Shown: positions 35,030-63,032 of the stretch, piece after piece
How the letters are laid out: every line of letters starts with the position of its first letter
Position numbering within the stretch: the stretch's first letter is position 1
Assembly (NCBI RefSeq): GCF_001194135.2
Contig: NC_068982.1
Span: 185,635,125-185,699,124, forward strand
Length of the DNA stretch: 64,000 bases
Direction: 5' to 3'
Origin: Octopus bimaculoides
Lineage: Eukaryota
The notes under the pieces: generated by a model
The model's database searches: none
Told to the model about the DNA's origin: nothing
Seen by the model: only the letters and a program-made list of their open reading frames with translations
Made by a program: the position numbers and the translations under genes

Positions 35030-35104
35030 CCGAGGAATAAATTTTTTTATTTCTTGATAAATCTCATTGTTCACTGTTTCAAATGATTTATTCTCAGTAT
35101 CCAA
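35030..35104 (-). CDS. AK5-like: AK-like gene, exon h (LDTENKSFETVNNEIYQEIKKFIPR)
   Basis: Acceptor gtgctctcctccAG, donor GTaagt, 75 nt, phase 0-0. C-terminal strand and helix of domain B, paralogous to exon c. Confidence 0.8.
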
Positions 35105-35196
35105 CTGGAGGAGAGCACATTGTAGAAAAAAAATTTTTTAATTATTGTACTTGGATTCTGATATACATGGATACAAGGATAAATGAAGACTAAAAG

Positions 35197-35694
35197 TAGT
35201 GGTTGGAAGGAAGATGTGTAGCATGTGACTGTCGCATTGACCATGACAGAGAAAGTTGAGCAGAAAATCTGCATCAAATTTTGGCAAAAGATTGGTGATA
35301 ACTTCTCAGAAGCCTATCTTAGTTCTGCTGGTTGCAGGTCTCCCAGAACATTCATCAATATCGACATTTTTTAGCCATCTTGGAAATATCTGAACCACTG
35401 GCACACTTGTGTATGGCTCATACACTCCTCTCCATACACTTTCTGCAACTTTATGTAGGTCTCTAAACAGGTATTGCCATGACAACTTTCTCTGTCATGG
35501 TCAATGCAATGATCACACACTACACATGCTCCTTCCAAGCACTCCTGTAAACAGCCGAAGTGAGCTAGAATGTTAAAACTTAGTGTGCATGCACAGCAGA
35601 GTTTAAGGTCAATCTGTGTCAAACAGCTTCATTATGCATGCTTTAGCTTCATTACTATGGTAACAGTCCGGATACTTATTGATCAAACCCTGTA
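35197..35694. mobile_element. Rearranged mariner derivative: two head-to-head copies of the transposase 5' end
   Basis: Plus strand MTEKVEQKICIKFWQKIG; minus strand ETYIKLQKVYGEECMSHTQVCQWFRYFQDG. 35199-35258 is inverted at 35483-35542. Right TIR ...gatcaaaccctg followed by TA. Confidence 0.8.
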
Positions 35695-35814
35695 TTTGTA
35701 CTCATTTATATGCATTTATGTTACTTTATATAAATTTATTGCTGTTTAATATAAAGTTTATTGATTCATATATTAGTACAGTTTAATATACATTTCTAAC
35801 ATTTGATTTACATA

Positions 35815-36020
35815 AGGTGGTGAGCTGGCAGAATCGTTAGCATGCCAGGTAAAATGCCTAGTGGCATTCTGTCCATCTTTACATTCTGAGTTCAAATTCT
35901 GCTGGGGTTGACTTTGCCTTTCATTTTTCCAGTGTCAATAAATAAGTACCAGTTGAGCACTGGGGTTGATGTAATTGACTTATTCCTCCCCAGAATTGCT
36001 GGCCTTGTGCCAAAAGTTGA
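35815..36020 (+). mobile_element. SINE family A (CpG-decayed)
   Basis: ggtgagctggcagaatcgttagc...gagttcaaattctgctggggttgactttgcc...ataagtaccagttgagcactgggg. Confidence 0.85.
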
Positions 36021-36174
36021 AATCAATATTTGATTTACACATTTACTGATCTTTTTTATTGTTTAAATTCATTTGTAATGTTTTATACATGTGTCTCTAC
36101 CTTAGAAATGTTAAAAAAAAAAAAAATGATGGAACTTGAAGACAGAGCAATGAGAACAAAAATAAGGGCCCTAC

Positions 36175-36366
36175 CGTGACTAGCCTGGACAAATCATCAT
36201 AATAATTAATGACAGGTAAGGTGTGTGTCTCAAAACAAGTGATCTCGTTAGTTATAGCTAATAGATTGTTCACTGAATATGAAGCCCTTGCACTGCGCTC
36301 CATTAGAACTTTCACAGCTTCCTGTTTAGGGCATCTTAAGTGGATCATTGTTGTAGGTAAACCAAT
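36175..36366 (-). CDS. AK5-like: AK-like gene, exon g (IGLPTTMIHLRCPKQEAVKVLMERS...FETHTLPVINYYDDLSRLVT)
   Basis: Acceptor ctttatatttcAG, donor GTaggg, 192 nt, phase 0-0. Starts IG.P and ends PVI.YY...L, like the equivalent AK5 exon; overlaps ORF 36097..36348. Confidence 0.9.
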
Positions 36367-37452
36367 CTGAAATATAAAGTCAACATATAGAGCTCATTGT
36401 TGAACTGGGTAACACATTATACAGCTTCTTCCTCCCCTACTGTTCTACCATTGTGTCAATATGTTCCTACCATTTAGCCTTAGGTCAATATATAAGGCTC
36501 CAGTTAGTACAGGTTCAGTATATTGTTGAGGCTCTTTCTATAGTGTTAATGTATTGTACATGTGAACAGTATATGGAGACCTTTGAAATGGACCACATAT
36601 CGTACACCATTTGTGAATATACAGTATTCCTAGAAAATATAAAGATTAACCTATTGTACATACTGTAATATTGATTTAAACTTACATTTTAACAATAAGG
36701 TAATATTGAGGGTGCTCTCTAGAACTGTATTGATACAGTTTAAAGTATGTAGTATTCAGTAAACAGACAGTAAATCCATTCACATTGCATTAATATAGTA
36801 TGTATCCTTCAGAAATGACATAACACCCAGTACATTTTCAAGAGTAGCAATAACAAACTTCATGCAATTCATTCCTTTGAAAGTTGCTTGCTGCTGATGG
36901 CATGTTTAATACGTGCAGTCTTTTGAAAATTGTTTACCTTTGTATTCAATCCCTATCTGCCTTTGAAAAATACTTGCTGTGGGTACCCTGTTCCTGGCTG
37001 TTGTGATCATCTCTTTGTTTCTACCATGGTAGAACTTGCAATTATTCACCAAAAATAAACTGACTTAACAATAAACTATTCTGTATGTACGTATGTTAAT
37101 TAGACTGTTTATGAAAGAAAGATTAGATTCTCCACAGTTATGCCATTCACAACGATGTTATAGCCACAACTGCAGCTTCAGTAGCTATAATCATTACATG
37201 TTCCGTATCTTTCAACAAATTATCATGCTGTTAAAACTTGTTTAACACAGTTGACAACTTCTGGAATGTGAAATCCCTTATTGAGTGGATAATTAATTTT
37301 TGACAGTGTTCATAGTAAAGTTATGCAACAGAGAAATCACTGCTGTTCGTTGTCTTTGAAACTGTAGACTACAATGATTCTCTTGTTGCTTAACATTACC
37401 CTGGACACTTGTTTCTTTCATACATGTAATACATGTACTTGCACAGTTGTGA

Positions 37453-37924
37453 CACTTGAAGCTTTGGTTAGATGCAGCAACTTTTATAACCTCAGCCATT
37501 ACAGCTTCAGCAATGTTACAAATTATAAAGCCTTCAACAAGCTGCATGCTCAAACTTGGATGCTACAACTCACAGTTACAAATATTGCAAGTTCAACAAT
37601 TTTTATAAGTTTGACAGTTTGAGGACTTAATCTAATAAAATATCCACAGCTACAAAGCTGGTCAAATACCAGTAGATCAAGTTGTCAATACATTGTGTTC
37701 TGCACCCTTTGAAGATGTTGAAACAAAGATATATTTTATTAGATTAAGTCCCCAAATTTGTTAAACTTGTGAAAATTGTTGAACATGCAATATTTGTCAC
37801 TATAAGTTGTTTCATCCAAGGCTGTGCATGAAACTTGTTGAAGGCTTTATAACTTGTAATATTGCTGAGGTTGTAATAATTGCTGAGGTTATAAAGTTGC
37901 TGCATCTAACCAAAGCTTCAAGTG
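37453..37924. repeat. About 470-bp imperfect palindrome (foldback element)
   Basis: 37453-37644 is the reverse complement of 37728-37924, with a spacer of about 85 bp. It produces the mirror ORFs 37293..37553(-) and 37807..38016(+). Confidence 0.88.
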
Positions 37925-38489
37925 AAATAACATTGGTAATTGATAAAATGCAGATTATCCAATTTCACATGTTACACTCTGGAATGCTGTTTTTGGATTC
38001 ACCCTTTAATCATTAACACTGTCTTATAGCAAACTAACTATCTATATGCTATGGCGTGAACTCTGAACACACTTTATCAAGCTTCATAACATTTTTGTTT
38101 TGCAATGCCAACATTTTAATACTCTAAGAAGTATGATAGTAAATGCTATTTTGCTGTGCTCTGCCTCTGCTATTTAACAATAGAATAGTAATATGTGATA
38201 TTAGATTTTATTATTGTACATTGTTATTGTCATCTTATGAAATTTTAGTCTTATGCAATTAACTGTACTCTAAATTTTTAAGCTAAAATTGTTACAACAT
38301 TTAGTACACTCTGAAGTATTAGAGCTACATGTTGCACTTATTCTAGAGATTGGATAGCAGACATCATGTCCTCTATCATTGGGGTCAACATTTCATAAAC
38401 TTTTCAAGAAAAGAATAACATATAGTGTAGCCTGTAGCACTATATCAATGTATTGTTTATCTTCTAGGATAAGAATTTATAACACATAG

Positions 38490-38625
38490 ACACAGCTGTG
38501 TGGCTGAGAAGTTTGCTTCACAACCACATGTTTTTCTGGTACTTTAGGCAAGTATTTTGTACTATAACCCTGGAATGACTAAAGCCATGTGAATGGATTT
38601 CGTAGATGGGAACTGAAAGCAGCCC

Positions 38626-38630
<5 letters not shown>
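38490..38630 (+). mobile_element. SINE family B head
   Basis: gctgtgtggctgagaagtttgcttcacaaccacatg...ggcaagt...aaagccatgtgaatggatt...ggaactgaaagcagccc. Confidence 0.7.
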
Positions 38631-38658
<28 letters not shown>

Positions 38659-39309
38659 ATATATGAAGTTGTCTATCAGTAGATAACAGCAGGAAAATCA
38701 TGGGCAAGAAAGAGACTTCAGAGGTTGGTGTGCATGAGGGATAGTGTTCTGAGAATGATATTCTGAACCGTTGTAGATGTTTATGGGTGTCCATCTGTGA
38801 TTGTACATGTGTTGTTACATAAAACATGGTTTTAGTGGTCTTCTAGAGGGAGGTGTTTTGTATATATGATCTGGTGTTCAGGGGTCAGTACACATGTAGT
38901 GACAGGGGTTGTGATTCAAGAGTTTTGTTGTAGCATGAATCTTTGTCCTTGTATATTCTTGGGTGCCTTTGTCAGTCACTCTGTTGCGAGTATCATCTTA
39001 GGGGAGGCCCTAAAAGGAAAACAAGTGATCTTTCATGTGGAGTATATCTGTTTCATTGGATAGGTTACTGTTGCTGTTGTTTAACCCCAGGTTAGTCCTG
39101 TCAAGCATACCTATAATTAAAGACATTCCAGCCATGACTTTCCTGACTTTCTAAGACTATGTAGGATGATGCTATATTATGAGAATGGTCTTTCTATAAG
39201 ATAGAAAGGTGTGATGAGGGACATTAGGCTACTATTTCCACTAGGTTCAGTCATCACATTGAGGCTAAATTGATGGCTTGTTTTTGTGTAGCCAGTATAT
39301 ATGCATGGT

Positions 39310-39720
39310 TTGTATGAAGTTAATGAGGATGGTAGTAGTAATGATGATGTGGACAATGATGATGATAAGGATGATAATGGTAGTGATGATGATGAGGAGG
39401 ATGGTGGTGGTGGTGGTGGTGGTGGTGATGATGAGGATGATGGTGGTGGTGGTGGTGGTGGTGATGGTAATAGTAGTGGTGGTGATGCTGATGATGATTT
39501 GCATAGTTGTTGTGTGATGGTGATGGTGGTGATGCAGTTAGTTGCAATCATGATGATGATGATGGTAAGGATGCTGATGGTGGCAGTGGTGGTGGTAGTA
39601 GTGTCAGTGATAGTGCTGGTGGAGGTGGTCGTGGTGGTGATGAAGATGATAGTAGTGGTAGCAATGGTGACTGAGGATGTTTATGATGATGGTGATGGTA
39701 ATTGTAATGATAACAATAGG
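39310..39720. repeat. Degenerate (GAT/GGT)n low-complexity tract
   Basis: Directly visible; source of the spurious poly-H/D/G/V ORFs. Confidence 0.9.
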
Positions 39721-40280
39721 GATGCTGTCAAACCCTACTTCACTTCTCAATACCACACCTTTCAAAACAAAGTGTTCACAAGAACCTGCTTCCCACCTTA
39801 CACACACACACACACACACACACACGCCTCCTGATCTACAGGTGATTTTGGCAAGGTGGGTAGTTTTGGCAGCAGAATCATTATAAAACCTTATCTCCCT
39901 GACCTACTTTTTTTTTCCCTTGCCTCTCTGTCTTTTGCTTCACCACCACCACTGCCNNNNNNNNNNNNNNNNNNNNNNNNNNNNNNNNNNNNNNNNNNNN
40001 NNNNNNNNNNNNNNNNNNNNNNNNNNNNNNNNNNNNNNNNNNNNNNNNNNNNNNNNNNNNNNNNNNNNNNNNNNNNNNNNNNNNNNNNNNNNNNNNNNNN
40101 NNNNNNNNNNNNNNNNNNNNNNNNNNNNNNNNNNNNNNNNNNNNNNNNNNNNNNNNNNNNNNNNNNNNNNNNNNNNNNNNNNNNNNNNNNNNNNNNNNNN
40201 NNNNNNNNNNNNNNNNNNNNNNNNNNNNNNNNNNNNNNNNNNNNNNNNNNNNNNNNNNNNNNNNNNNNNNNNNNNNNNNN

Positions 40281-40334
<54 letters not shown>

Positions 40335-40344
40335 ACACACACAA

Positions 40345-42880
40345 GCATGAAAAGTAGGTCAGGAGAAATTGTAGAGATGCTGGAGTAGAGGAAAGTAGAT
40401 ATGTGCTGTATTCTATTGGTAAAATGGAAGTAAGCTTCTGTCAGACCCTACCTGGGCAAGGAATACAGGTACAAACACCTTCTGAATTAGTGACTGTGAT
40501 TGGGCTGGTGGAATAGGCGTATTATTAGTTGAGAAATCAAGTAATCAAGGCAGTGAGAGTATACTCTTACTGTTAAAATAACCAAGCTTAGGCAAGTCAT
40601 GGACATGACAGTGACATTTATCTCTGCATGCTCTCCAGAGGAACAGGAAGATGGCTTCTATAAGGCTCTCCTGCAGACTATCATGTAGGTTAAATTTAAT
40701 GAACAAATTAGACACCATTTTGATGACTCTTTGCTGTGCATGGTGGCTATGGAAAAAGTATGAGGAATGTGGATAGGTCAAAGCTTCTGATATAAATGAT
40801 CTAACCATTTGCAATGCTAAATTTTGAAATCTGGTCAACCAGCTGATCACTTACCAAACCAATCAGGTAAACACACAAACCAGATATTCTTCATAGTTAC
40901 CAGGAAATGGAATAAACAGTTAAAGAAGATGCTGATTAATACAGACCATTGGTCAGTGACATTTAAGTTAGTACTAGACATAGTTAAAGACAGAAAAGTG
41001 ATACAGAAAAAAGTGTGGAAGTTAAAAATTTTTTTAGATCAGTTGTAGGTTCAAAAGAAAAACTAGTTGATGAAAAGAAGTGGGGGATGATGGAGACTTA
41101 TATGAGAGGATACCTGAAAGTTTCTACAAGTAACAATCAAGTAGAAGATATGCTAAATGTCAGATATACTTATCAAAGTGAGACACTGCAAGTAAGAGGC
41201 TTGCACATGTTCTATGACATAAAGATCAAAGGTGTGAGATATCCAGTATTACAAGATAGTGTACTAGAGAGAATTGAAATGTCATAGGGAAGAATATTCA
41301 TGGAGTAATAGCAGTAAACTTGCCTTCACTGACATTGAAAAGAGATGTGGAAATGCTTTTGAATGAAGAGAATGCTCTAGAGAAAGAGATCCTATACCAA
41401 GTACTCAAAGTGGGATTAAGGACATGAAGGCAGGAAAAGCAGCTGGACCATCAAGAATAGCAACTGAGCTGCTTAAAATATCTGGCAAAGTAGGTCATAT
41501 GTTAGTTGCTCAAGTGATTAATAATTCACAGAGAACACCTGTGAGTGATTGATCAGTATCATCATTAATGGTTAGAAAGGTAAAAAAAACTTGTCCAGAG
41601 AAAGGCAATGACAGAGCTATCAAATTGATGGAGAACTGATTAGGAAGAGAATTAACTTAAATGCAAAGTAGTGCAGATTTATGCCAGGACAAAGTTTCAT
41701 CCATGGTTGCTTCCTTGTGAGATGATGTCAGGAAAGTACTGAGCTAAAAGTAAGCCATTCTGCCTAGCTTTTGTTGATCTGAAGAAGGCTTTTGATGGTG
41801 TTCCATATTTTGTTGTCAGATAGTTCTGAAGAAAACTAAAGATAAAAGAATGGCTTGTGTGAGCCATGAAAGCCTGGACAGAGTTGCTGTTGGCAAGATG
41901 AGAGTCAACAACAATTCAGTGATGACAATGTGCAGATAGGTATTCATCAAGAATTGGTTCTCAGTTTCCTTCTATTTTTTTTTTATAACAGAGGAGATGA
42001 ACCCTAATTGTCTATGGGAACTTTTGCATGCTAATGGGCTAGTTCTTATAGCTGAATAGACCAAAAATTTGGAGGGGAAATTTTAATTTGGAAGTAAGTC
42101 TTAGAATTGAGAGATCTCAGAGGAAACCTAGCAAATATTAAAGTTTTAGTTTGTAAGAAAGTAGACAGGACCCTATGGACATAGAAAAGCTTAGTATGTA
42201 GAAGAGGTGTAATAAGATTCCATTTGGTATACTCATTATAAACCATGAATGCACAAGAAGTGTAGTGGAATTACAGAAATGCTGATATGGAAGGTAGACT
42301 TCATTTGTGGCAAATGTACAAAACTGTTAGCAGTAAGAGTACCTATGAAATAGATTCCTCCAAATGTTCATCAGGCTACCTAAAAGTTAACGATAGCTTT
42401 TGCTTTTGATATGATTTAAAAACAGTGGTGGTAGGGGTTTTGAAAGCACATTTGCTAGAGTAAAAACAAGGTGGATAACGTTCTGGGAACTATTTTATCT
42501 TTTAGTAACAAAGAATTCTCTCTTAGAATGAAGGGCAGATATTTCAAATACTTGCTTACAAAATATGATGCTGTATGACAGTGAAAGCATGGATTATAAA
42601 TGTAGAGGATTTATAAAGGTTGGAAAAATTGGAAGGGAACATATTGGATGTGTAATGTCATTATACATAAATGACAGGGCACAAATGAGTTGAGAGAAAA
42701 GCTGGATATAAGAAGAATCAAATATAGCATGCAAAAGGACTATGATCATGTGAAGTTGTCTGAGGAAGTGGATGGAATGTATAGAAGAGAAAGACATAAG
42801 ACAAAGTGGTGGAGACTGATTTCAAGAGGCTGAATCTTATGAAGGAGATGACAAAGGATTCTGAAGACTCACCCATCTTA
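40345..42880 (+). mobile_element. Old near full-length RTE LINE (same clade as 33460-34850), heavily decayed
   Basis: RSGEIVEMLE*RKVDMCC (APE start), FVDLKKAFDGVP, VG.HQ..VLS, C.WELL.A..L, PHD-like remnants near 42170-42320. Confidence 0.85.
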
Positions 42881-43019
42881 TGCATGCATAAAAAATAAAT
42901 ATAAAATTGATGATAGGATGGCTGGTGATTGTGATGGAAATTAGTATGTATAATATCTAAAAACTCCCTGTGAGAATAGACTTCTGAATGACTATAAATA
43001 GTAGCAGTCTGAGTGAGAG

Positions 43020-45225
43020 TCCGGACAGAACAGGTATTAATCACAGGAGGTCATAAGGTGTCGTTTTGGTAGTTTGTCGGAATATCGTTTGTTGGTTCAT
43101 ATATAGTTCGTGGAGAGTTTGTTGGATTGTTACGTTGTTGTTACTCAGCTTTGTTATATGTTTTATTGTTACTACACAGTTACAATGTGAAAAAAGTATC
43201 ATTATAACAATTGGCAATACAACAATATTGGCAACAAGGATTTGAAGCTCACGCAAGTCAGTTAACAAATTTTTGTGATACAAAGTTGTTAATTTGGGAA
43301 GACCTATTAGCTTCTATAATACAGTTGCAAAAACAGCAACAGGAGTTGCAGAAACAACTACTTCAGCAACAAGAAAAATAATGGAGCTGTGTTTTAAGAA
43401 GTCTGGAAACACTATAAGTTCATTTTCATAAGACGGCATATTGAACTCTATAACAGAATTCAGTTATGACATAGAGGAGGGTATAATGTTTGCAGCATAC
43501 TCTAGAAAGTATGAAGAAATATTCAGGGAAGACTGCAAGTCGTGGATAGACAATGAAAAAGTAAGACTATTATTATGTAAATTAGCATGAAAAATAAATA
43601 TTGTAATTTTGTTTCCAGGAAGCAGATGAACTGCTATCAAAAATATTCAGTGAAAAGAGTTCCCTATTTAACACTTAATGGGAGTATTGGAATCTAGTTA
43701 CAAAAGAAGATGAAGACTTTGTCACATATGTTGGGACTGTAAACCGAATGTGTGAAAGGTTTAAAGTGAAGCAACTAACTCCTGATATGTTTAATCTCCT
43801 CATTTTTGTACAAGGGATTACTGCAAACAAAGTTGCAGAGATACATGTAAGAATTCTCACAAAACTTGAATAGTGGACCAAAGTTTAACCCTGCAGACAG
43901 TTGCAGAGGAGTGTCAAAGAATGGTAAACTTATGTCAGGACATAAAGAAAATTGAAGAAGAGTTCTCACAAGTACAAGCATGTTGACCGGGAAATTATAT
44001 AAACAAAAAAAAAAAAAATATGTTAAGGTCTCTGTTCTAAGACTGAGGCCTGTTTTCAAATAAAGGAAAACGTCATACCTATATTCAAACCATATAGAAA
44101 GGTATCATTTGCTGTGATAAAGCAGGTAGAGGAAGAATTAGACAGACTGGAGAAAATGGAAATTATTCAAACNNNNNNNNNNNNNNNNNNNNNNNNNNNN
44201 NNNNNNNNNNNNNNNNNNNNNNNNNNNNNNNNNNNNNNNNNNNNNNNNNNNNNNNNNNNNNNNNNNNNNNNNNNNNNNNNNNNNNNNNNNNNNNNNNNNN
44301 NNNNNNNNNNNNNNNNNNNNNNNNNNNNNNNNNNNNNNNNNNNNNNNNNNNNNNNNNNNNNNNNNNNNNNNNNNNNNNNNNNNNNNNNNNNNNNNNNNNN
44401 NNNNNNNNNNNNNNNNNNNNNNNNNNNNNNNNNAACAGTGAATACACACAGAGGACTCATCATCATCATCATCATCATCGTTTAACGTCCGCTTTCCATG
44501 CTAGCATGGGTTGGACGATTTGACTGAGGACTGGTGAAACCGGATGGCAACACCAGGCTCCAATCTAATTTGGCAGAGTTTCTACAGCTGGATGCCCTTC
44601 CTAACGCCAACCACTCAGAGAGTGTAGTGGGTGCTTTTACGTGTCACCCGCATGAAAGCCAGTCAGGCGGTATTGGCAACGGCCACGCTCAAAATGGTGT
44701 CTTTTATGTGCCACCCGCACAAGAGCCAGTCCAGGGGCACTGGCAACGATCTCGCTCGAAAATCCTACGAAGGCCAGTCAGGCGGTACTGGCAAGGGCCG
44801 CCATTTGGTATGAAGCTCTCACCTGCAATATTTCAACAGGTTATAGATGTGGTGTTGGTGGACTGTTAATTTGCAATTCCATACTTCAACGATGTATTAA
44901 TTAAAAGTGAACCTCATGATCAGCATATCAAACATGTGAAGTGTGTTTTTCAAAAAATAAGAGATTATGGTTTCACACTCAGTGAGGAGAAATGTGAATT
45001 CTGTGCCAAAAATGAAACATCCAATTGAGATGTAGACCCAGGCTCAGCCACAAAGGCAGTAACTCTGAATCACTGAATGAAAGCTGACTAAATCTGTGGT
45101 GACCTATTCAACCAGTACCAACATGGAAAAGAAGATGCGAAAGGATGACATTATTATTGTCATTTTATGCCTGCTTTCTACGTTGGCATAGATTGGAGTT
45201 ATTGCCTTCCAAGATGGGTCATAGG
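43020..45225 (+). mobile_element. Decayed Ty3/Gypsy LTR retrotransposon (5' LTR end, PBS, gag, RT, RNase H remnants)
   Basis: ...aatacaaca then TGGCAACAAGGA (PBS-like, 43229-43240). Gln-rich gag start with KVRLLL.KL; PIFKPYRKVSFAV..VEEELDRLE; NTHRGL|PFGMKLSPAIFQQ; YFNDVLI; KIRDYGFTLSEEKCEF. Confidence 0.88.
44458..44795 (-). mobile_element. Young RTE 3' UTR copy nested in the Gypsy RT
   Basis: (CAT)n tail at 44458-44480. Inserted between the NTHRGL and PFG codons. Confidence 0.92.
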
Positions 45226-45245
45226 ATATTTTGTTCATATATTTC

Positions 45246-45276
<31 letters not shown>

Positions 45277-45941: not shown

Positions 45942-46058
45942 CATATTATTGAATTGGTCAAGTTGAGTAATGTTCTTGGGATAACCAAGCACTATAATTA
46001 ATTGCTTTAGTTGCACAGCATCATCAATTTTTTTATTGATTAACTCATTCACATCAAA
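45942..46058 (-). CDS. AK5-like: AK-like gene, exon f (FDVNELINKKIDDAVQLKQLIIVLGYPKNITQLDQFNNM)
   Basis: Acceptor tgtatgtttttattgcAG, donor GTaagc, 117 nt, phase 0-0. IIVLGYPK...Q...F corresponds to the AK LIDGYPR motif. Not in the ORF track. Confidence 0.88.
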
Positions 46059-46979: not shown

Positions 46980-47375
46980 CATCATCATCATCATCATCAT
47001 CGTCGTTTAACGTCCGCTTTCCATGCTAGCATGGGTTGGACGATTTGACTGAGGACTGGTGAAACCAGATGGCTACACCAGGCTCCAATCTGATTTGGCA
47101 GAGTTTCTACAGCTGGATGCCCTTCCTAACGCCAACCACTCAGAGAGTGTAGTGGATGCTTTTACGTGCCACCGGCACGAAGGCCAGTCAGGCGGTACTG
47201 GCAACGGCCACGCTCAAAATGGTGTATTTTATGTGCCACTCGCACAAGAGCCAGTCCAGGGGCACTGGCAACGATCTCACTTGAAAGTCCTTACACATGC
47301 CGCGGCCACAAGTGCCAGAAAGGCCACGCTGGGCACAGGTGCCATCACAATTTCACTTTCACTTGCCCCAATAAG
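46980..47375 (-). mobile_element. Young RTE 3' UTR copy
   Basis: (CAT)n tail; near-identical to the 44458 and 63770 copies. Confidence 0.92.
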
Positions 47376-47452: not shown

Positions 47453-47497
<45 letters not shown>

Positions 47498-49217: not shown

Positions 49218-49396
49218 CTGTTGTATAAATTCGTCATTTCTAATCAGTGTTGCAGTAGTTTTCCACTGGCTACAGTCAGGATTTTTGGGATCATTAATAC
49301 CATTACATACCATCTGACCAATAGAAATAAAATCCAGTCTAGGATATTGCGATGCCAATGTTGTAGCATGCAGCAATTTTTGACAACCTGGGATAC
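49218..49396 (-). CDS. AK5-like: AK-like gene, exon e (P-loop/NMP-binding: G-IPGCQKLLHATTLASQYPRLDFISIGQMVC...SQWKTTATLIRNDEFIQQ)
   Basis: Acceptor ctttgtcttttatatttaAG, donor GTgagc, 179 nt, phase 1-0. Aligns with GGPGSGKGTQC...HLSxGDLLR...GELVP; overlaps ORF 49068..49376. Confidence 0.88.
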
Positions 49397-49738: not shown

Positions 49739-49867
49739 CTGTTAGAAGAATCATTGGGCATTTTGGGAAATGTGGATAAAAAGAGAGTTCTGAAGGATAT
49801 GTTATCTCTTTTGATGAAGTCTCCAAATCACTATAAACTGACATGCACTGTAACTGCATCTGTATTT
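49739..49867 (-). CDS. AK5-like: AK-like gene, exon d (linker plus beta1: IQMQLQCMSVYSDLETSSKEITYPSELSFYPHFPKCPMILLT-G)
   Basis: Acceptor ttttctatttgtccaattAG, donor GTaaca, 129 nt, phase 1-1. Ends PKCPMILLTG, like AK5 RKCKIIFIIG, with the intron in the first P-loop Gly codon. Confidence 0.8.
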
Positions 49868-51512: not shown

Positions 51513-51524
51513 GATTATTATTTA

Positions 51525-52049: not shown

Positions 52050-52510
52050 TAACAAAGAAACATGCTCCTTCTCGGAAAATTGAGAGCGAGGGAAAAAATG
52101 AGAACATAGATATTGAATAGCCTAAACTTAATGACGTCACCTAAGCGAATAATTTTTCATCTCTAAGCAACGTCAAAACTTTTGGTGTCGACAATGAGAA
52201 CAACAGCAACAGCAGCAACAGTGACAGCAACAACAACAACAATAACAACAGCAACAACAATACAAAAGAAATGAAACATAAAATGCAAATATTGCCTCTG
52301 CTTCTTTTGCATTTTTGGTGAGAGTTATAATATGATGTTTGATATGTGTGATGTATAACAATATGACATTTAGAGAGACAAATTATCATATAATGTGAAA
52401 ATATTAAGTGTCATGGAGTTACGCAGTTTGCCACGGGATAATATTGAATTAGTTACCTGATTGTGGTTTTCCATCGAGAGAATCCTTTATAAGGTTCCTG
52501 ATTTCCGAAA
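52050..52510. promoter_or_regulatory. CpG-retaining patch with CRE (TGACGTCA 52132-52139) and an X-box-like half site (CTAAGCAAC)
   Basis: Local cluster of CpGs in an otherwise CpG-poor gene body. Motifs seen directly; function inferred. Confidence 0.35.
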
Positions 52511-52541
52511 TGACATTATCTTGTTTGGTATCTTTATCAAT
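52457..52541 (-). CDS. AK5-like: AK-like gene, exon c (IDKDTKQDNVISEIRNLIKDSLDGKPQS+G nt)
   Basis: Acceptor tttttgtcttccttgtcAG, donor GTaact, 85 nt, phase 0-1. Resembles the AK C-terminal ID....D.V..EI...I helix. Confidence 0.8.
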
Positions 52542-52689
52542 CTGACAAGGAAGACAAAAAGCTATAGACAACTGTGGTGAGGGTCATAACATGATGTATA
52601 TGATGGATTCTTCCATTGAAGATGATGTATGAGTGTTCAGCAAGAAGACAGATAAAAAAAAAGATCCATCCTAATTGACAATCAACAAC

Positions 52690-55600: not shown

Positions 55601-55960
55601 GGCTGCTTTGTAGTTAAGAAGAGGACATGGACTGTAAAGTTGCTCATATAAATTTCACAGAATGGCTATCTATTTCTTGCCATCATGCTTGCAAAGCTCA
55701 AGCTAGAGACCTCCAGTGACTTTCTCCATCAGTCCTTGTCACTATCACTTCATTGCCATAAGATTTGATTTGTCTTCATGTTGTCACTGAGTGATCTGCA
55801 CTATGAGTTTGTTTAAAGGGGAATTTACTTGAGTTGGATAAAACACACTCACTCAACCTGTACTGGTGCACAATGTGCCACTTGTCAGATGCAGATTAGG
55901 TTGCAGATCAAGTAGTGATGGTATGGCTTGATCAACCAATGGGTTGAGGGTTGGTGGCTC
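52690..55960 (-). mobile_element. Old near full-length RTE (BovB-like) LINE
   Basis: AAWNVCTL (APE start), HLIDYVIV, FV.LTKAFNS, KQGCV..P, MRCLRQI, WCGHIL..PKQLFHSQL, C-terminal HHCSHC finger. Confidence 0.88.
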
Positions 55961-55994
55961 AACACATATACTTATACAAAAAATAAAAAATATT

Positions 55995-56045
<51 letters not shown>

Positions 56046-56139
56046 ATATAAATATATCAAAAATATAATTACAATTTAAAAATATAAATAAATAAAAGTA
56101 TATAAATGAAATATAGCCACTCCACATTCTTTATTTTCT

Positions 56140-56290
56140 TTCCTTGTTTCTATCTGCGTTCTTTTCTGTGGAAGAGCGTAGGCTCGAAACGTTAAAGACT
56201 TTTTCACTTCCCAAGCGTTATACTAATACATCTGTTTGTTGTCTACACCACCTGTCTTTGTCTGTTGTTTATTGTGAATTCTCCCTATAT
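56140..56290 (+). mobile_element. Penelope-like pLTR remnant with degenerate hammerhead core
   Basis: CTGTGGA-A-GAGC-gtag-GCTC-GAAACGTTA (56166-56194): stem II GAGC/GCTC, palindrome AACGTT. Confidence 0.55.
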
Positions 56291-56981
56291 ATATACACAC
56301 ACACACACATATACACACACTTTGTTGGATGGTTGTTGACTACTCATGATATATATATATTATATGCCAAGTTCCATATCAAGCATTTATTATTTGGCTT
56401 CAGTGTATTAAAAACTATACTTTACTTCACTACGTATATGTGCATCCATGTATATGAAATGTAAACTATTATTACAACATCAGTATTAATATAAAGGCCA
56501 TTTCACTTTAAGTATAAACTCTAGAGTATATGTAAATGAATGATCTAAATTTGATTTAAATTATATTCATGCACCATTATACTTAAAAATTCTATACATA
56601 CAAATGCTTACAAATCAATATTTAATAGCATTTTGTGCTAACAATTGTATCTTTATTTTTGTGTTCGCATCATACACTTACACTCTCAAAATCTTGAATA
56701 TCAAACTGTTTCTCATACTATTTACACTTTTATAATCATGCCGACACCAAACATTTTTAACCTTTATATCACATATATACCAGAACTCTTTCGTTTAACT
56801 TTTGTATCATCTATATGCCAAGTCTTTTTCTCTAACAGCTTTTGTGATGCAATGTTGAAAGTTCAATGGAGGCAACTGAGGTGTTCCAAAGTGTTTAATA
56901 GTCACTCACCTTCTTTTGCTCAAATCATAGTTAATGACTTGGAAAGTGAGTGTATAAAATAAACAAAGAATGAAGGAAGAA

Positions 56982-57049
<68 letters not shown>

Positions 57050-57185
57050 TTCCTTTATTGATCACAAAGGGTTTACATCAAGAAAAACTTTATACACAGT
57101 ACAGGACAAAACATGGAATGTGTGTGTTTGTGTGTTGTGAAGGTTTTGCAATAATAATAATAATGATGATGATGATGATGATGAT

Positions 57186-57357
57186 AATAATAAAATACTG
57201 AAAACTTGGAACTGAAATTCGCATTGTTGACCTGCAGAAAAGTATCATTCTATATTCTGCAAGAATACTAAGAAAGATTCTTGAGGAGATATGTTGTTGC
57301 CAAACCTAACCTCAAGATAAAATACCTGCTAACCAAATTAGCATTCACTAGCAAAAA

Positions 57358-57360
<3 letters not shown>
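57186..57360 (+). mobile_element. R4/Dong-type 3' end embedded in (TAA)n
   Basis: IVDLQKSIILYSARILRKILE plus 3' UTR, with (AAT)n on both sides. Confidence 0.75.
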
Positions 57361-57402
<42 letters not shown>

Positions 57403-57403
<1 letters not shown>

Positions 57404-57870
57404 GATGGGCTACAGCAAATATTCTAAAAAGGGCTACAGCAAATATTCTGCTCAATACCGCAGATTTGCTTGTCAGTTGTTTGACCTTAACCAGTTGAGC
57501 ATGACCCTTGGTGGCTGACAATATGTGCATCTCTGATCACGAGCAGAAGTAGTGGGGGAACATCATAGCCATGTATTGAGAGGAAGTCTTTGGGGTTTGG
57601 ATAATTCACCTCTGGAAATACTGATGTTTCCTTCAACATCCTTAAACAACCCTTATTTAAGGACCATTTGAACGGGATAGACTACTCGACCTGAAGAAAA
57701 TTCTAACTGGGCCCCACCTGCAAGGTCATGCGCTGTTTATCTTGATATGAGATCACCATGTCGTACACATATGATTGTGATGCATGTGCCTTGTGTACCC
57801 TTATCAGATGGGTAGTCCTGGGCTTCGTATATTTGTACCCCAGTGTCACTTTGATGGCATGCACTGCTCT
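57403..57870. repeat. Interspersed repeat remnant(s), probably LINE/SINE tail, with a 19-bp tandem duplication (gggctacagcaaatattct x2)
   Basis: The duplication is visible; family assignment is uncertain. Confidence 0.4.
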
Positions 57871-58349
57871 CTCACTCAATAATAGCAACAACAATGACAG
57901 GAACAGGAACAAGAACAACAACAATGAAAATAACGAATTTTTTTATTAATCACAAGGGTTGGCTAAAAGATCGAGTATGGTACAGAATGATATCGAGTGA
58001 GGTTTCATGTACAGAATGATATCGTGTGATGTTTCATGAACAAGGTGTAAACAAGTGAAATAAGAAAAATAAGAAAAAAAGTTTGAGAGCTATTTGTGAA
58101 AACCCCACAAAAGCAATAGTCACCCCGAGTAGTAAAGCAAACACCCTCTCTTAGCTGTCCTCCTCCAATATATATGCACATGCTCAGAGCAGGCCTGTTC
58201 ACTCAGGTCATACTTGCTATACTCATCCATCTTTCAACAAATTTGCTGGGAGGCAGCAGTTTCTTCTCTAAACCTACTTCCCTTTTCAACTGAAAGTTGA
58301 AAAAGTTGTAGGTCTGGATAAAAAGGAAAGTGTCTTTCACCAAGGCCTT

Positions 58350-59535
58350 TAATAATAATAATAATAATAATAATAATGAAATTATTGTATACAGTGCTCA
58401 GGTGTTCTGCAACTTGTCAACAGTGCATATAAAGCATATGCAGTATTGTACAAATGCCTGGAAAGTGAACAGTGTATGAGTCAGATACATGCTTGCGTGT
58501 GTATGGAGGGGAGAAAATCAAGTGTAGTGTTGGCGAATCCCAGGAAGCATGGAAGTTTTGAAGGATGCAGTGCTCCGACAACTAACAACTGATGCCAGCA
58601 GTTTCTTTCATACTTCAGCAACTCTTAGCGTGAAAAAGTGTTTCCGAAAGTCATGGGAGCTGTGCTGTTTTCTGACTTTGTAAACATGTCCACGGGTGTT
58701 AGACAGGTGGAGTCTGAAAAGGTGCTCAGAGTTATTGTTAGTAAGACGGTTAATAATTTTATAGGTGTCTGCCAAGTCGGCCACCAGACATCGGAGTTTC
58801 AATGTATCCATGCCCAGGGAAGTAAGGCGTTTGGAATATGGCAAATGCCTGATGGAGGGTATTCTCTTGGTTGCATGTTGCTGAACGGTTTCCAGACGAT
58901 AAATATCCTGGGCAAGATAGGGGTTCCAGACCGGAGACACAAATTCCAGGTGAGGCCACACCATAGCTATATAAAGCCTCAAATAGATAGCTGAAGAGCA
59001 GCTCACAAAGTACTTGGTAAGTGATGCCTAGACACCCTCAGCCTTCTTGGCAATTTTAGCAATGTGTTTTAACCAACGAAAATCTCTGTCGACAATAATG
59101 TCCAGATCACGTTCACAAGAAGACATTTTGAGATTAGTGTTGTGGAGGGAGTAAGTAGATGCTGGGTTTTTCCTCCCAAAATGCATGGTGGTACATTTGT
59201 CCACAGCCAGCTTGAGTTGCCATTCCATGATCTATTGCTGGATTGCGTCCAGGTCTGATTGCAATAAAGATCTATAGTGTACAGGATTTGTCCTTTTTAT
59301 TTCGAGGTACAGCTTGATGTCATCTGCATATTTCAGCACTGTGGCATTCTTTAAGTTGGCATTTATGTCATTAATATATGCAACAAATAAAAGGGGTCCA
59401 AGAACAGATCCCTGTGGTGCACCAGATGTCATCTCATAGGGTGAAGAGTGCTGTCCAAGAACTGTGACAACCTCTTTTCGGCCGATAATGAAGGACTTCA
59501 ACCAGTTATAGAGATCATCTCCTACACCCAGATAA
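58350..59535 (-). mobile_element. CR1-clade LINE 3' part with (ATT)n tail
   Basis: SGAPQGSVLGPLLFVAYIND, KYADDIKLY, LQSDLDAIQQW, RPHLEF.SPVWNPY..DI..LE.VQ..ATK, TRGHVYK...FF..RV. Confidence 0.95.
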
Positions 59536-59944
59536 AAAATGACTACTCTTTCTGGCTAAAAGTAGGCAGTGGAATGATCTTTCCAGTAGATTCAGCAGTT
59601 TGACATAACTCCACAAACCAGCAATGCTTGGGTACTGTGTGAACAGTTTCAATGCCCTCTTCATATCTTGGACAGACTGGGATTTTTGGAAATTATCCCT
59701 GCATGCTGACCTGTAAGTTCCTTGGAAGGGACGAACCAGATAATTTTCATTGATTTCCAGAGTTTTCTAAAGATTGTTGCTCATTTTCCTCACCCTAATT
59801 ATCTGTAGAATACCAACATGAAACTTACGCCCATCACATTACCAAATTGGCAGAGAGTTTTGAGTGCTTGATAATATTTCAAACATCAAACTCCCAGACT
59901 TGGTCTTTACTTTCTTTTCTTTTATAATAAAAGTAACACAATAT

Positions 59945-60520
59945 ATCTTGACTAGGATCTAAACAAACTGAAAAATCCAGCAGAAGAAGATTTGAGAAAA
60001 ACTTCAACCAAGATCAAAAGTTAACAGAAGAAATGACAGTTCCAAGTGTTATGCATACAAAATTTGCTGAAACTGTCATGGTTTTAGGGATTGTCAGCAA
60101 TGAAGGACATGTGATGCCTTCTTACTTCTTTCTACAAGGCCTTAGAGTTAACTCTGCCACCTACATTGAGGTCCTGGAAACAATTGTTACGCCCTGGATA
60201 GACTGTGTATGCAATGGAATGCCATATGTGTTTCAGCAAGACTCTGCACTATCACACATGACTCTAGTAACACAAGAATGGATGGCTGTAAATTTTCATG
60301 ATCACATATTTGACCTCCTAATTTCCCACATCTCAATCTATTGGACTATTACATGTGGAGCATTGTTGAGAGAGAAGGCAATGAACATGGCCATAACACA
60401 AAAGATTCTATGAGAGCTGCCAGAGTCAGAGGAATGTCCAAAATGAACCAGGACAAGCATGTAGATGATTTAAAGTAAGGGATATCTTTATGGAAGTGTA
60501 AACATATTACACTACAGAAG
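59945..60520 (+). mobile_element. Second maT/DD37D-like transposase remnant
   Basis: EKNFNQDQKVNRRND; TVMVLGIVSNEGHVMP..YIEVL..PYVFQQDSA..H; NLLDYYMWSIVER. Confidence 0.85.
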
Positions 60521-60770
60521 TAGTAATCTAACACTAGAAAGAACAACAGCTTCACTCATTAGAGTTTTGAACCCTATATCAACCACCAATTACATTCTAT
60601 TTGATCAAATTAGATTATGTCATCTATAAATGTTGTGTTTCATTTCCTCTGCTCATTTAACTGTCCTGTTTACATAACTTTTTTGTAAATACTTTATTGG
60701 TTAAGTGTTTAGTTTTTGTTTCATGAAGTTTTCCAGCCATGCCCATTATTTTTTTATATTTCAGATTTAG

Positions 60771-61343
60771 TACGCTGTGCATGAGAAGACCCGGCAAGCT
60801 AAGTGAGACCTAAATCCAAGGCCTCCGCCAGGGGTGTAGCCAGCCCACTTATGCATACCTTCATTCATTGGACACTAAACGCTTGCGAAGACCTGTTGAG
60901 GCAAGTGAAATCGGAATCGAAATCGAACTAAATTCAACGACTGGCACCCATGCCAACGTTGTCTCCTCCATTGGACACGAAACTCGGCTTGTGAAGACAT
61001 GTTGGGGCAAGTGAAAGCAAAATCGTGATGGCACCTGTGCCCAGCGTCACCTTCCTGGCACAAGTGCCAGGAAGGCTCCTGTGCAGGTGGCACGTAAAAT
61101 ACACCATTTTGAGTGTGGCCGTTGCCAGTACCACCTGACTGGCCTTTGTGCTGGTGGCACGTAAAAGCACCCACTACACTCTCGGAGTGGTTGGCGTTAG
61201 GAAGGGCATCCAGCTGTAGAAACTCTGCCAGATTAGATTGGAGCCTGGTGTAGCCATCTGGTTCACCAGTCCTCAGTCAAATCGTCCAACCCATGCTAGC
61301 ATGGAAAGCGGACGTTAAACGATGATGATGATGATGATGATGA
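60771..61343 (+). mobile_element. Longest young RTE 3' UTR copy, (GAT)n tail
   Basis: 5' part matches the UTR that follows the ORF at 33460-34850; 3' part matches all tail copies. Confidence 0.92.
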
Positions 61344-61570
61344 ACACTATATTATCCAAAGTGATATTTTCAGAAGTTGAAGAGGGTATTGTTTTAAACT
61401 TCTATATCTAGCAGAATGAGTGACCTTATAAGGCATCCTCATTGACTCTTCAGCTACCTAGTTCTCTAATTAGTGCTTATAATGTGGAATATCCTCATTA
61501 CAAAATATCAATTGCTAATTAATAATTTACAGAACCATATTTGAAAATCTGTAGGAAAGCAAAATCTTAC

Positions 61571-61771
61571 TTCAATTAATTTATTAATTCTCTTGTAATG
61601 TGCAATAACTGGACTCATTCGTTCTTTGTAAGTTTGGACATGAAGAGCAATCAATCCTGGGATGTTTGCATTTATATCAACCTTTGCTTGTAACTTTGTA
61701 AGACATTTCTCAATGGTCGTTGATTCTTCAGTATGTATGTAAACCACAACTATAATCTGGTCAGTTTTTAT
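61571..61771 (-). CDS. AK5-like: AK-like gene, exon b (IKTDQIIVVVYIHTEE...HVQTYKERMSPVIAHYKRINKLIE)
   Basis: Acceptor ttttctcatcatttAG, donor GTaaga, 201 nt, phase 0-0. Matches the AK beta4/LID/PVI.YY..L segment; overlaps ORF 61508..61747. Confidence 0.88.
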
Positions 61772-62261
61772 CTAAATGATGAGAAAAGTGAGAAAGATAA
61801 TTATTCAATTGTCTCTGCTTGGGGTTGAGTTTTCAAACCAACTAATTTATGGCGGGTGTCTACTTTATACATGCAAATATCTGAGATGAGTTGTTGGTCA
61901 TGTTACACGGAGTATTTATATTACTATTAATAGTTTTATATTATATTATTTTTAATGACCTTTGGGATTGATGAACGGACATTTTTACTGCTTTGTAAAG
62001 GAAAGAAGGACAATGCTTAACCTAACCCTTTATTTATTTCAGGATCTCTAAGGCTGTTGAGAATTTAGGAAATTACTTCAGATGAGAGACCTTGCCCAAA
62101 TATTTGCAGCACCTTAAATTTTACTAAAGGCATCTAAAGATTAGGTGGTAGTAGTGTTAAACTGAGTAATGGATGAAGTCTACTACCCAAGAACTTGGAA
62201 CATAAAGAACCACAACAAATGCTTCATAGTTTCGTAGTTAATATAACTCATCAGGCAACAT

Positions 62262-62618
62262 GCCATGCTTGAGGAAACCTATTGAATCAAGTAAATCAAA
62301 ATCAAATCAAATCACAATCAAATGGAAACTGGAGTTGTGGCCGATACCAGTGCTGCCCGGCTGGCTCCCCTGCTGGTGGCACGCAATAAGCACCATTCAT
62401 GCTTGGGTTGTTGCCAGAGCTGCCTGACTGGCTTCCATGCCGGTGGCATGTAAAAAACACCCACTACACTCTTGGAGTGGTTGGCGTTAGGAAGGGCATC
62501 CAGCTGTAGAAATATTGCCTGATCAGATTGGAGCCTGGTGCAGCCTCCTGGCTTGCCAGTTCCCAGTCAAACCGTCCAACCCATGCCAGCATGGAAAATG
62601 GACGTTAAACGATGATGA
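62262..62618 (+). mobile_element. Older RTE 3' UTR copy
   Basis: ggtggcacgcaataagcacc...ggagtggttggcgttaggaagggcatccagctgtag...aaacgatgatga. Confidence 0.88.
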
Positions 62619-62927
62619 GGTTGTAAATAGACATTCCAAAGATGAGGCTTATATGTGGAAACAATAATGTGAATTCCTTCTACCATAGACCTGTATTTAT
62701 TTTGAATAGACAACCACTTACAGCAGTTAGATAACAATAAGAATATGAAGAAAATAAAGCAGGTGAGGGTTATTAACTGTCTCAACCAAATTAGCAAAAC
62801 TATATGTAATTTCTACAACTAGCCTGAGTGAATTAGTCAAGAGTTGTCTGCCTATCATGGAAACAAATTTGTGCTCACATAAAGTAGTGGAGTGATGAAG
62901 TCAGTGGTGTAAAACTGAAGTACTCAC

Positions 62928-63032
62928 GCAATTTTCAAAAGCTGCAACCTGCTCCATGGTTGTAGGATAATCTACCACAATAAAACATCGAGCTTCTGGA
63001 CATTTATCAAGGTTTTTCTGAATAAAACTTCT
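62928..63032 (-). CDS. AK5-like: Adenylate kinase (AK1/AK5-like) gene, exon a (domain A: RSFIQKNLDKCPEARCFIVVDYPTTMEQVAAFENC)
   Basis: Acceptor cttctaattttgcAG, donor GTgagt, 105 nt, phase 0-0. PEARCFIVVDYPT..EQ...FE matches the AK segment GFLIDG(F/Y)PR..Q...F. Confidence 0.85.

Follow-up and report, generated by a model that had tools for sequence, protein, structure and literature searches.

An adenylate-kinase-like gene on the minus strand of a 64-kb stretch of the Octopus bimaculoides genome (the window) is best explained as a member of the AK5 family in which both kinase domains are non-catalytic and may act as tethered structural or partner-binding modules; we give this reading a probability of roughly 0.6. 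The locus is an annotated RefSeq gene, "adenylate kinase isoenzyme 5", known before this analysis. Its product, XP_014775120.1 (533 aa), consists of a docking-like helical domain at the N-terminus followed by two short-type adenylate-kinase (AK) domains, A and B.

Between 63032 and 35030 we rebuilt, exactly as originally predicted, eight exons with canonical splice sites (acceptor AG after a pyrimidine tract, donor GT) and compatible phases (incoming 0,0,0,1,1,0,0,0). Their lengths of 105/201/85/129/179/117/192/75 nt yield one spliced frame of 1083 nt, or 361 codons, up to a GTAAGT donor, and its translation matches residues 169-529 of XP_014775120.1 with 100% identity. The gene had been called intact, which is correct for its frame and splice sites, but the window holds only part of it: 168 codons lie upstream, beyond the window edge, and a ninth exon follows at 32098-32084. 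Residues 1-168, covering the docking-like domain at the N-terminus and the first half of domain A, had no match within the window. The eight-exon feature is the 3' two-thirds of an Octopus AK5-family gene, laid out as follows:

62928..63032, minus strand: exon 1 (residues 169-203; AG/GT, phase 0/0), core strand of domain A, AK profile positions 74-109; VDYPT at 62975-62961 replaces DGYPR
61571..61771, minus strand: exon 2 (residues 204-270, 100% identical to XP_014775120.1), strand 4, degenerate LID region without GRxDD and C-terminal helices of domain A, AK profile positions 110-173
52457..52541, minus strand: exon 3 (residues 271-299, outgoing phase 1), final strand and helix of domain A
49739..49867, minus strand: exon 4 (phase 1 to phase 1), inter-domain linker and strand beta-1 of domain B (KCPMILLT-G)
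49218..49396, minus strand: exon 5, degenerate P-loop (G-IPGCQKLL) and NMP-binding region of domain B; GIPGCQKLL at 49397-49371, with the first base of its Gly codon supplied by exon 4; SIGQMVC at 49325-49305, with Cys in the R44 position
45942..46058, minus strand: exon 6, helix 4 and strand 3 of domain B, AK profile positions 71-108; GYPK at 45986-45975 in place of GYPR
44173..44433, no strand: assembly gap in intron 6 (45941-36367)
39957..40280, no strand: assembly gap in intron 6, microsatellites on both sides
36175..36366, minus strand: exon 7, strand 4, degenerate LID and later helices of domain B, AK profile positions 103-172, the top AK-profile match of the window (50 bits); its LID reads ERSARASYSVNN where the canonical form is RGxxxGRxDDN
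35030..35104, minus strand: exon 8, with the final strand and helix of domain B (LDTENKSFETVNNEIYQEIKKFIPR); donor GTAAGT at 35029, with unspliced read-through giving PRVS-stop at 35021
32700-33149: assembly gap in the last intron
32084..32098, minus strand: exon 9, terminal coding exon, SEYS-stop (residues 530-533 of XP_014775120.1), acceptor TTTTGTTTTGTATAG

Exons 6 and 7, which flank two of the gaps, are both in phase 0, and the alignment with canonical kinases is unbroken across their join. The counterpart of intron 6 in Argonauta hians is gap-free (2616 bp), and an AK5-like gene of a mussel carries an intron at this point too; the gaps therefore change only the length of the intron and hide no exon.

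The proposed ADK fold was borne out by searches with the Pfam ADK profile (PF00406), whose gathering score of 26.8 was exceeded by both the domain A fragment (27.7 bits) and domain B (37 bits). By sequence, both domains are thus members of the ADK family, but only barely or weakly above its threshold, and the whole of XP_014775120.1 reached 58.4 bits, compared to 555 bits for a four-domain scallop protein. Sequence searches against the PDB matched UMP kinase, AK1 and AK5. An AlphaFold model of domain B had a pLDDT of 87.2 and a pTM of 0.83, with an input alignment of canonical kinases that favours the AK fold. In Foldseek, its top matches were UMP kinase (1uky), AK1 and AK5 (2bwj), with TM-scores of 0.75-0.89, about 0.8 for these three. 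Domain B is accordingly predicted to adopt the short fold of AK1, AK5 and UMP-CMP kinases, with CORE, NMP-binding and short LID topology.

The best non-octopod matches of the protein were AK5-like proteins of about 700-1070 aa from molluscs, nemerteans, echinoderms and chytrids, together with an algal "flagellar adenylate kinase". The invertebrate AK5-like proteins (Mizuhopecten XP_021354678.1, Sinanodonta KAL3872034.1) have the same N-terminal domain, with the pattern DxKxYLxxxxIxxLFxxLMxGL, and tandem short-type AK domains, up to four of them, whereas the octopod protein has two. The N-terminal domain (residues 1-60, outside the window) is 32-44% identical to the N-termini of mollusc, nemertean and echinoderm AK5-like proteins; the AK domains are only 17-27% identical to these relatives, while the scallop protein is 45-50% identical to those of chiton and gastropods and still about 32% to fish AK5. 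The intron positions had been described as AK5-like, and indeed the AK5-like gene of the bivalve Sinanodonta woodiana has all four domain B introns and the corresponding domain A introns at the same position and in the same phase. In both genes, a phase-1 intron splits the first Gly codon of the P-loop. By its N-terminal helical domain, tandem short AK domains and intron positions and phases, the protein is assigned to the AK5/AK5-like group, and the sequence comparisons trace it to flagellar adenylate kinases of the multi-domain "AK5-like" type found in other animals. None of 71 canonical AK5-like matches was from a cephalopod, in a word-indexed search that also missed the Octopus protein itself.

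Most domains of the invertebrate AK5-like relatives keep GGPGSGKGT, GDxLR, GYPR, RGxxxxRxDDN and the late arginine; the octopod protein keeps almost none of these. The deviating motifs quoted in the original prediction (GIPGCQKLL, SIGQMVC, GYPK, VDYPT) were all located in the window, and alignment in AK1 numbering confirmed that catalytic residues are lost and GRxDD is missing in either domain. Octopus domain B shows G20Q, G22L, T23L, R44C and R97K, with K21 kept, and, in the LID and late positions, R138Y, D140V, D141N and R149E, with R132 kept. Of its five catalytic arginines, four have therefore gone, along with both LID aspartates and the P-loop glycines; nothing is left but the P-loop lysine and a single LID arginine. 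In Argonauta domain B the arginine positions read R44T, R97K, R132Q, R138Y and R149G, and D140/D141 are replaced by I and K. Where the P-loop consensus is GxPGxGKGT, Octopus reads GIPGCQKLL in domain B and GPPESEKVK in domain A, and Argonauta reads GLPGSLKTK and GSLESNMNQ, respectively, so that the only P-loop residue common to both species is the lysine of domain B. Domain A, with R97T in both octopods, an NMP-binding region about 15 residues shorter and no GRxDD, is degenerate to at least the same degree. As judged from the aligned residues, the P-loop, the NMP-site arginine and the LID and late residues of a competent adenylate kinase are largely absent, and the protein very probably has no adenylate-kinase activity.

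Domain B might still bind nucleotide, as an adenine-nucleotide sensor or a very slow phosphotransferase, or one of altered specificity, rather than being purely structural. The GxPGxxK skeleton is present in both octopods, as are the P-loop lysine, K97, Q101, G40 and Y138, and the complete CORE/NMP/LID topology is predicted with high confidence. Yet the glycine before the P-loop lysine and the G22-T23 pair have given way to bulky, species-specific residues (Q, L, L in Octopus; L, T, K in Argonauta), R44, R138, R149 and D140/D141 are gone, and R132 persists in Octopus only. Further, the two octopods agree at the former active-site positions no more often than in the rest of the domain, which argues against a conserved ligand pocket, but says nothing positive about function. 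The Foldseek PDB list for domain B includes two adenylate kinases with Arg-to-Lys mutations (4jlo R150K, 6s36 R119K). A single change of this kind lowers the rate by orders of magnitude, a further point against this alternative. Overall, we consider retained nucleotide binding unlikely as an alternative to non-catalytic, structural AK domains.

That the frame and splice sites are kept, as the original prediction stressed, was examined in Argonauta hians, where orthologues of all eight exons were found; each of the 16 splice sites and all phases are conserved, and the indels are in frame throughout. Six of the eight exons (105/201/91/129/167/117/192/75 nt) equal their Octopus counterparts in length. 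Exon 1 (L001 14502-14606) has the same 105 nt; exon 3, at 91 nt, carries an in-frame insertion of 6 nt relative to Octopus; exon 4, unannotated (L001 23494-23622), keeps its 129 nt, though the linker sequence is only 12% identical; and exon 8 (75 nt) has a conserved donor. Exon 9 (SEYS-stop) had no counterpart in Argonauta. At the DNA level only exons 2 and 7 could be aligned, each with 70% identity, and the introns were unalignable. The two proteins are 43% identical (dN 0.45, dS 1.12), with a dN/dS of about 0.40 (bootstrap interval 0.27-0.56), which is approximate since dS is near saturation, but is not close to 1, the value that would have counted against the original prediction. Neutral simulation at the observed synonymous distance produced no stop-free frame in 20,000 runs and an expected identity of 15%, as opposed to the 43% observed; an open frame here is far from a chance outcome. 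Since frame, splice sites and phases are kept at a dN/dS of about 0.40 while the introns have diverged, the gene is not decaying, and there is little doubt that it is a real gene under selection. This purifying selection, across two distantly related octopod lineages, is real but relaxed, for a dN/dS of 0.4 and a protein identity of 43% amount to weak constraint.

One could also read the weak constraint as loss of function and drift toward a pseudogene, with a transiently intact frame and an automated RefSeq name that masks a dying gene. The dN of 0.45, the low identity, a dN/dS well above that of typical enzymes, the diverged linker and the missing catalytic motifs would all fit such a course. 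However, neither species has a stop, a frameshift or a lost splice site in the eight exons, even though synonymous changes approach saturation (dS 1.1) and introns can no longer be aligned; together with the simulations and the upper bootstrap limit of 0.56, this makes drift improbable.

In another scenario, the dead domains would form the N-terminal half of a longer enzyme, joined in some transcripts to intact AK1-like domains downstream. In scallop and oyster, AK5-like proteins of about 990 aa do combine two AK5-type with two AK1-type domains, and both octopods share the donor that follows exon 8. In Argonauta, moreover, a gene model of 398 aa, with two ADK domains, starts 4.8 kb downstream on the same strand, its first exon encoding Met-Pro alone, so that active domains could share the locus. 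Nevertheless, this scenario has a low probability: the RefSeq protein stops four codons into exon 9, a scan of both strands with the AK profile gave no match in the roughly 32 kb of the window downstream of exon 9 (of which about 3.2 kb are gaps) and, in the window as a whole, none outside the five core exons, and in mussels and gastropods there are AK5-like proteins of 600-700 aa that likewise end after two domains.

Returning to an AK5-family protein with two non-catalytic domains, it is probably, from its sequence relationships, a non-enzymatic relative of flagellar adenylate kinases. Phosphate transfer would have been lost and the AK folds turned into structural or partner-binding modules, possibly with residual nucleotide binding by domain B, where GxPGxxK is kept. 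Through the N-terminal domain, its best-conserved part, the protein would be anchored at a site like that of its enzymatic relatives, most likely in sperm flagella or cilia. A scaffold, sensor, ciliary or sperm role, as suggested originally, is something we infer only from the flagellar multi-domain relatives and the comparatively well-conserved N-terminal domain outside the window. In profile searches this domain matched Pfam Dpy-30 with an E-value of 0.27 and DUF5586 with 2.4e-4, below the cut-off of that family, and its best PDB sequence match, the N-terminus of EFCAB10 (E-value 0.096), was not significant; its assignment as a docking domain is weak.

Axonemal AKs are tethered via RIIa/DPY30-type domains and also act as structural struts, and some AK domains of AK7, AK8 and AK9 are locked open or plugged by partner proteins (PMC11779644; bioRxiv 10.1101/2025.05.19.654877). 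As multi-domain AKs of the radial spoke on small helical RIIa/DPY30-type tethers, these three provide a working model for the octopus protein. They are, however, not orthologous to it, AK9 being only a distant structural match (9d2f_A, rank 34), their domains are described as catalytic, and the docking-domain similarity on the octopus side is not significant. A tethered structural or regulatory role in axonemes is a tentative proposal. Among the enzymatic relatives, sea urchin sperm is described as having a flagellar AK with triplicated catalytic domains (Kinukawa 2007, as cited in PMC2680645), and Foxj1 induces AK5 (PMC2680645).

Vertebrate AK5 (human, 562 aa, 14 exons) bears the same RefSeq name as the octopus protein and resembles it in size, in its N-terminal extension and in its two short-type AK domains; its structure 2bwj is among the best structural matches to domain B (TM 0.75-0.80), but its catalytic motifs have no counterpart in the octopus domains. 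Human AK5 is expressed mainly in brain. It is described as cytosolic (PMC11626602).

Other degenerate AK-like domains, such as Hydin_ADK (PF17213), domain 2 of Nucella lapillus KAL8598216.1 and those of the proteins P0063 and P0087, have likewise kept the AK fold and lost catalytic residues. The octopus domains show no specific sequence affinity to them (21% identity between domain A and Nucella domain 2). Most proteins of this kind keep at least one intact domain, whereas in the octopus protein every AK domain is degenerate; P0063 and P0087 have no intact AK domain either. Among the best 151 relatives, 48 of 281 full-length AK domains are without at least three of six catalytic residues, so degenerate AK domains are common in this group.

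The window is AT-rich, with many microsatellites, transposon debris and ten N runs. Within it, five evident exons were found by translation around the motifs of the original prediction, with boundaries placed at pyrimidine-tract/AG acceptors and GT(A/G)AG donors, and the remaining three were recovered by a splice-aware scan. Up to a GTAAGT donor at 35029, these eight exons give the same total of 361 codons as had been predicted.

Exons of the octopus gene in the window
63032-62928, minus strand, exon 1, incoming phase 0
61771-61571, minus strand, exon 2, incoming phase 0
52541-52457, minus strand, exon 3, incoming phase 0
49867-49739, minus strand, exon 4, incoming phase 1
49396-49218, minus strand, exon 5, incoming phase 1
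46058-45942, minus strand, exon 6, incoming phase 0
36366-36175, minus strand, exon 7, incoming phase 0
35104-35030, minus strand, exon 8, incoming phase 0, strong GTAAGT donor at 35029
32098-32084, minus strand, exon 9 (terminal), last four codons SEYS and stop

When 1.84 billion representative proteins were scanned exhaustively with HMMER, a 533-aa protein matched at 100% identity over residues 169-529. Its RefSeq entry is XP_014775120.1, named “adenylate kinase isoenzyme 5 [Octopus bimaculoides]”, and it maps onto the window exon by exon. This is thus a genuine gene with an existing annotation, of which the window contains only part; in tblastn with the full RefSeq protein, residues 1-168 lie beyond the high-coordinate window end, and a search for upstream exons in 63033-64000 gave no credible candidate. 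An adenylate kinase (AK) profile (351 domain hits), compared with all six-frame fragments of the window, matched the five core exons and no extra ones, and plain tblastn with human AK1 gave marginal matches only.

The first and second short-type AK domains of the protein, here domains A and B, narrowly exceed the gathering score of the Pfam ADK family (27.7 and 37 against 26.8 bits); canonical ADK domains score about 140 bits each. Sequence matches in the PDB are to UMP/CMP kinases, AK1 and AK5, and an AlphaFold model of domain B (pLDDT 87) has TM-scores of about 0.8 to the same three groups, with the reservation that its input alignment consisted of canonical kinases, which biases the model toward the AK fold. 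To compare residues, a single profile served to align 363 AK domain segments, taken from the 151 best relatives, and positions were numbered after AK1. The second-best match in our library of related sequences was a 425-aa hypothetical protein of Argonauta hians, whose locus (BAAFZT010000040.1) we retrieved; the orthologous exons were rebuilt, including a 129-nt exon omitted by the annotation and unannotated upstream exons.

Catalytic positions of domain B (AK1 residue and number; Octopus; Argonauta)
G20; Q; L
K21; K (kept); K (kept)
G22; L; T
T23; L; K
R44; C; T
R97; K; K
R132; R (kept); Q
R138; Y; Y
D140; V; I
D141; N; K
R149; E; G

In domain A of Octopus, R97 is replaced by T, GRxDD is absent and the NMP-binding region is about 15 residues below normal length; its P-loop, GPPESEKVK, is located outside the window. 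The original prediction had described degenerate catalytic motifs in both domains, and all of its motif statements are correct. Since GxPGxxK of domain B is retained in both octopods, this domain may still bind nucleotide or phosphate to some extent. Residues of the former pocket are conserved no better than the remainder of the domain. R97K, R138Y and the loss of R44, R149 and the LID aspartates are common to both species; most catalytic losses are older than the Octopus-Argonauta split.

The best matches after the two octopods were proteins of about 700-1070 aa from Nucella, Mizuhopecten, Sinanodonta, Elysia, nemerteans, a sea star and chytrid fungi, together with an algal “flagellar adenylate kinase”. 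These best non-octopod relatives are AK5-like kinases with several domains, from organisms that have flagellated cells. They have in common with the octopus protein an N-terminal domain, which is its best-conserved part (32-44% identity), whereas their identity to the octopus AK domains is only 17-27%, too low to decide which ancestral domains correspond to A and B. The octopus AK domains are more divergent from these relatives than fish AK5 is from scallop, and domain B is nearer to AK5-type (25-27%) than to AK1-type domains (17-18%). In a mussel AK5-like member, whose locus was used in place of the scallop four-domain protein, the introns match those of octopus exactly in position and phase in both domains, which bears out the proposed AK5-like intron positions, the reference being mussel rather than human AK5. 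A search with the scallop protein returned, within the limited sensitivity of the tool, 71 canonical AK5-like proteins from molluscs, annelids, brachiopods, echinoderms and vertebrates but none from cephalopods, suggesting, as a lead, that the octopod gene is the AK5 orthologue and not an extra copy. A word-indexed protein search, whose negatives are weak evidence, gave no match to a 265-aa draft query, missing even the Octopus protein, and with the Argonauta protein it returned only this protein itself and no further cephalopod orthologues.

We consider it unlikely that active AK domains belong to the same locus as the dead-AK gene. Scallop-type proteins do have two additional AK1-like domains, and in Argonauta the dead-AK gene is followed, 4.8 kb further downstream and in the same orientation, by a second gene model of 398 aa with two Pfam ADK domains (37001 onward in the retrieved locus, which ends at 42167). 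However, the Octopus RefSeq protein terminates in exon 9, and the AK profile found no AK-like sequence over the 32 kb of the window that remain beyond this exon. The first exon of the 398-aa model encodes Met-Pro only and its AK exons are beyond the retrieved locus; library proteins gave no match to this downstream region. The model may represent either an independent neighbour or, in a four-domain gene of the scallop type, the AK1-like half. A blastn search of the Argonauta locus for a counterpart of the SEYS-stop exon found none.

A mis-assembly or gap artefact can be rejected. Both flagged assembly gaps are located within intron 6, and exons 6 and 7, both of phase 0, when joined give a continuous alignment to canonical kinases. 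Further, the orthologous Argonauta intron is 2.6 kb long and gap-free, and at the equivalent position the mussel homologue is likewise interrupted by an intron. No coding sequence is hidden in the intron 6 gaps; the length of the intron alone is uncertain.

All eight exons are present in Argonauta, with AG/GT sites and phases equal to those of Octopus; six are identical in length, and the length differences in the other two are +6 and −12 nt. The proteins are 43% identical, and the Nei-Gojobori method gave dN 0.45, dS 1.12 and ω 0.40 (bootstrap 0.27-0.56), an approximate value that is more likely over- than under-estimated, as dS is near saturation. By region, ω was 0.36 for domain A, 0.38 for domain B and higher, 0.53, for the linker. 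When neutral substitutions were simulated at the observed distance, the frame stayed open in none of 20,000 cases, which excludes a chance open reading frame, and the expected identity was about 15%. At the DNA level, the two loci align co-linearly in exons 2 and 7 only, all other matches being to a dispersed repeat of about 170 bp. Exon and phase conservation, ω, the simulation and the DNA alignment therefore show that purifying selection acts on the gene, at a strength that would be low for an enzyme; with ω not near 1, it is not decaying. The Argonauta protein GAB1604798.1 is mis-annotated (locus positions concerned: 4638-4718, 6435-6596, 23494-23622 and 31036-32164): it omits the 129-nt linker/beta-1 exon and at least two upstream exons matching Octopus residues 94-171, and neither its N-terminal nor its C-terminal piece is matched in Octopus.

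The protein has kept the AK fold and lost the catalytic machinery while under selection. The observation behind the original prediction is confirmed, and its pseudoenzyme interpretation is supported by the lost residues, the predicted fold and the ω of 0.40. The octopus protein would then carry out no phosphotransfer, and its N-terminal domain, whose similarity to RIIa/Dpy-30 was not significant, would still tether it. Radial-spoke AK7, AK8 and AK9 are anchored by RIIa/DPY30 domains and act as struts, some of their domains being locked open or plugged by partners (PMC11779644; bioRxiv 10.1101/2025.05.19.654877). By analogy, the octopus AK folds may be structural or partner-binding modules. The AK5-like family has been tied to cilia and sperm (PMC2680645), and homology together with this literature points to a putative flagellar context. 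That octopods turned their sole AK5-type flagellar AK into a fully non-catalytic, tethered strut or adenine-nucleotide sensor is a tentative reading, to which we give a probability of about one in four. Were it true, ATP buffering in sperm or cilia would have passed to other AKs or an arginine-kinase shuttle, the scaffold role of the old enzyme being kept, and the transition from enzyme to pseudoenzyme would be dated and lineage-wide. Axoneme-anchored adenylate kinases are now credited with two roles, as enzymes that regenerate ATP and as structural components of radial spokes; a natural all-dead AK5-family protein, selected through the whole Octopus-Argonauta divergence, would separate the two roles and reveal what fold and tether do without catalysis. 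The RefSeq name should be read with caution, as it implies an activity of which the protein, judged by its residues, is almost certainly incapable.

Dead AK domains are less unusual than they first appeared. Among full-length domains of the relatives, 48 of 281 lack at least three of six catalytic residues, and about ten largely complete relative proteins have no intact AK domain. Domain 2 of Nucella lapillus KAL8598216.1 (P0004 in our library; residues 339-501) has no P-loop lysine, and much of its NMP-binding region is missing. One degenerate signature, K Q R Y H E over the six catalytic residues, recurs in three library representatives (among P0063, P0087, P0066 and P0146) and may point to a further conserved family of pseudoenzymes derived from AKs. 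The octopus case is of limited wider significance, pseudoenzyme derivatives being common and degenerate AK domains frequent in multi-domain relatives. What is distinctive is that all AK domains of an AK5-type protein are dead and that this state is conserved across two octopod superfamilies. A literature search for the octopus gene or AK pseudoenzymes found nothing specific, and the all-dead state of an annotated gene of a known family is unusual and apparently undescribed.

In a tandem-repeat scan, the N runs at 32700-33149, 39957-40280 and 44173-44433 had short tandem repeats at their borders, either perfect dinucleotide repeats or others (TA, AC/TG), and ORF translations indicated similar TA-type runs at several others, suggesting that the window gaps are unresolved microsatellites and not absent unique sequence. 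The repeat of about 170 bp, possibly SINE-like, occurs inside introns in at least four copies and both orientations (44457-44627, 46980-47152, 61174-61343, 62464-62618), and many copies of 70-75% identity are present in the Argonauta locus; recurring pseudo-ORFs starting with MKPDGNTRLQS arise from it. An ORF at 60033-60413 (plus strand) is mariner-like in appearance, with no Pfam match. Transposon remnants on the minus strand, within the gene and near it, comprise reverse-transcriptase fragments (RVT_1 with a PHD finger at 34297-34722, RVT_1 at 59232-59501 and LINE-like ORFs at 28515-30358) and a Mos1-type transposase HTH at 35371-35544.
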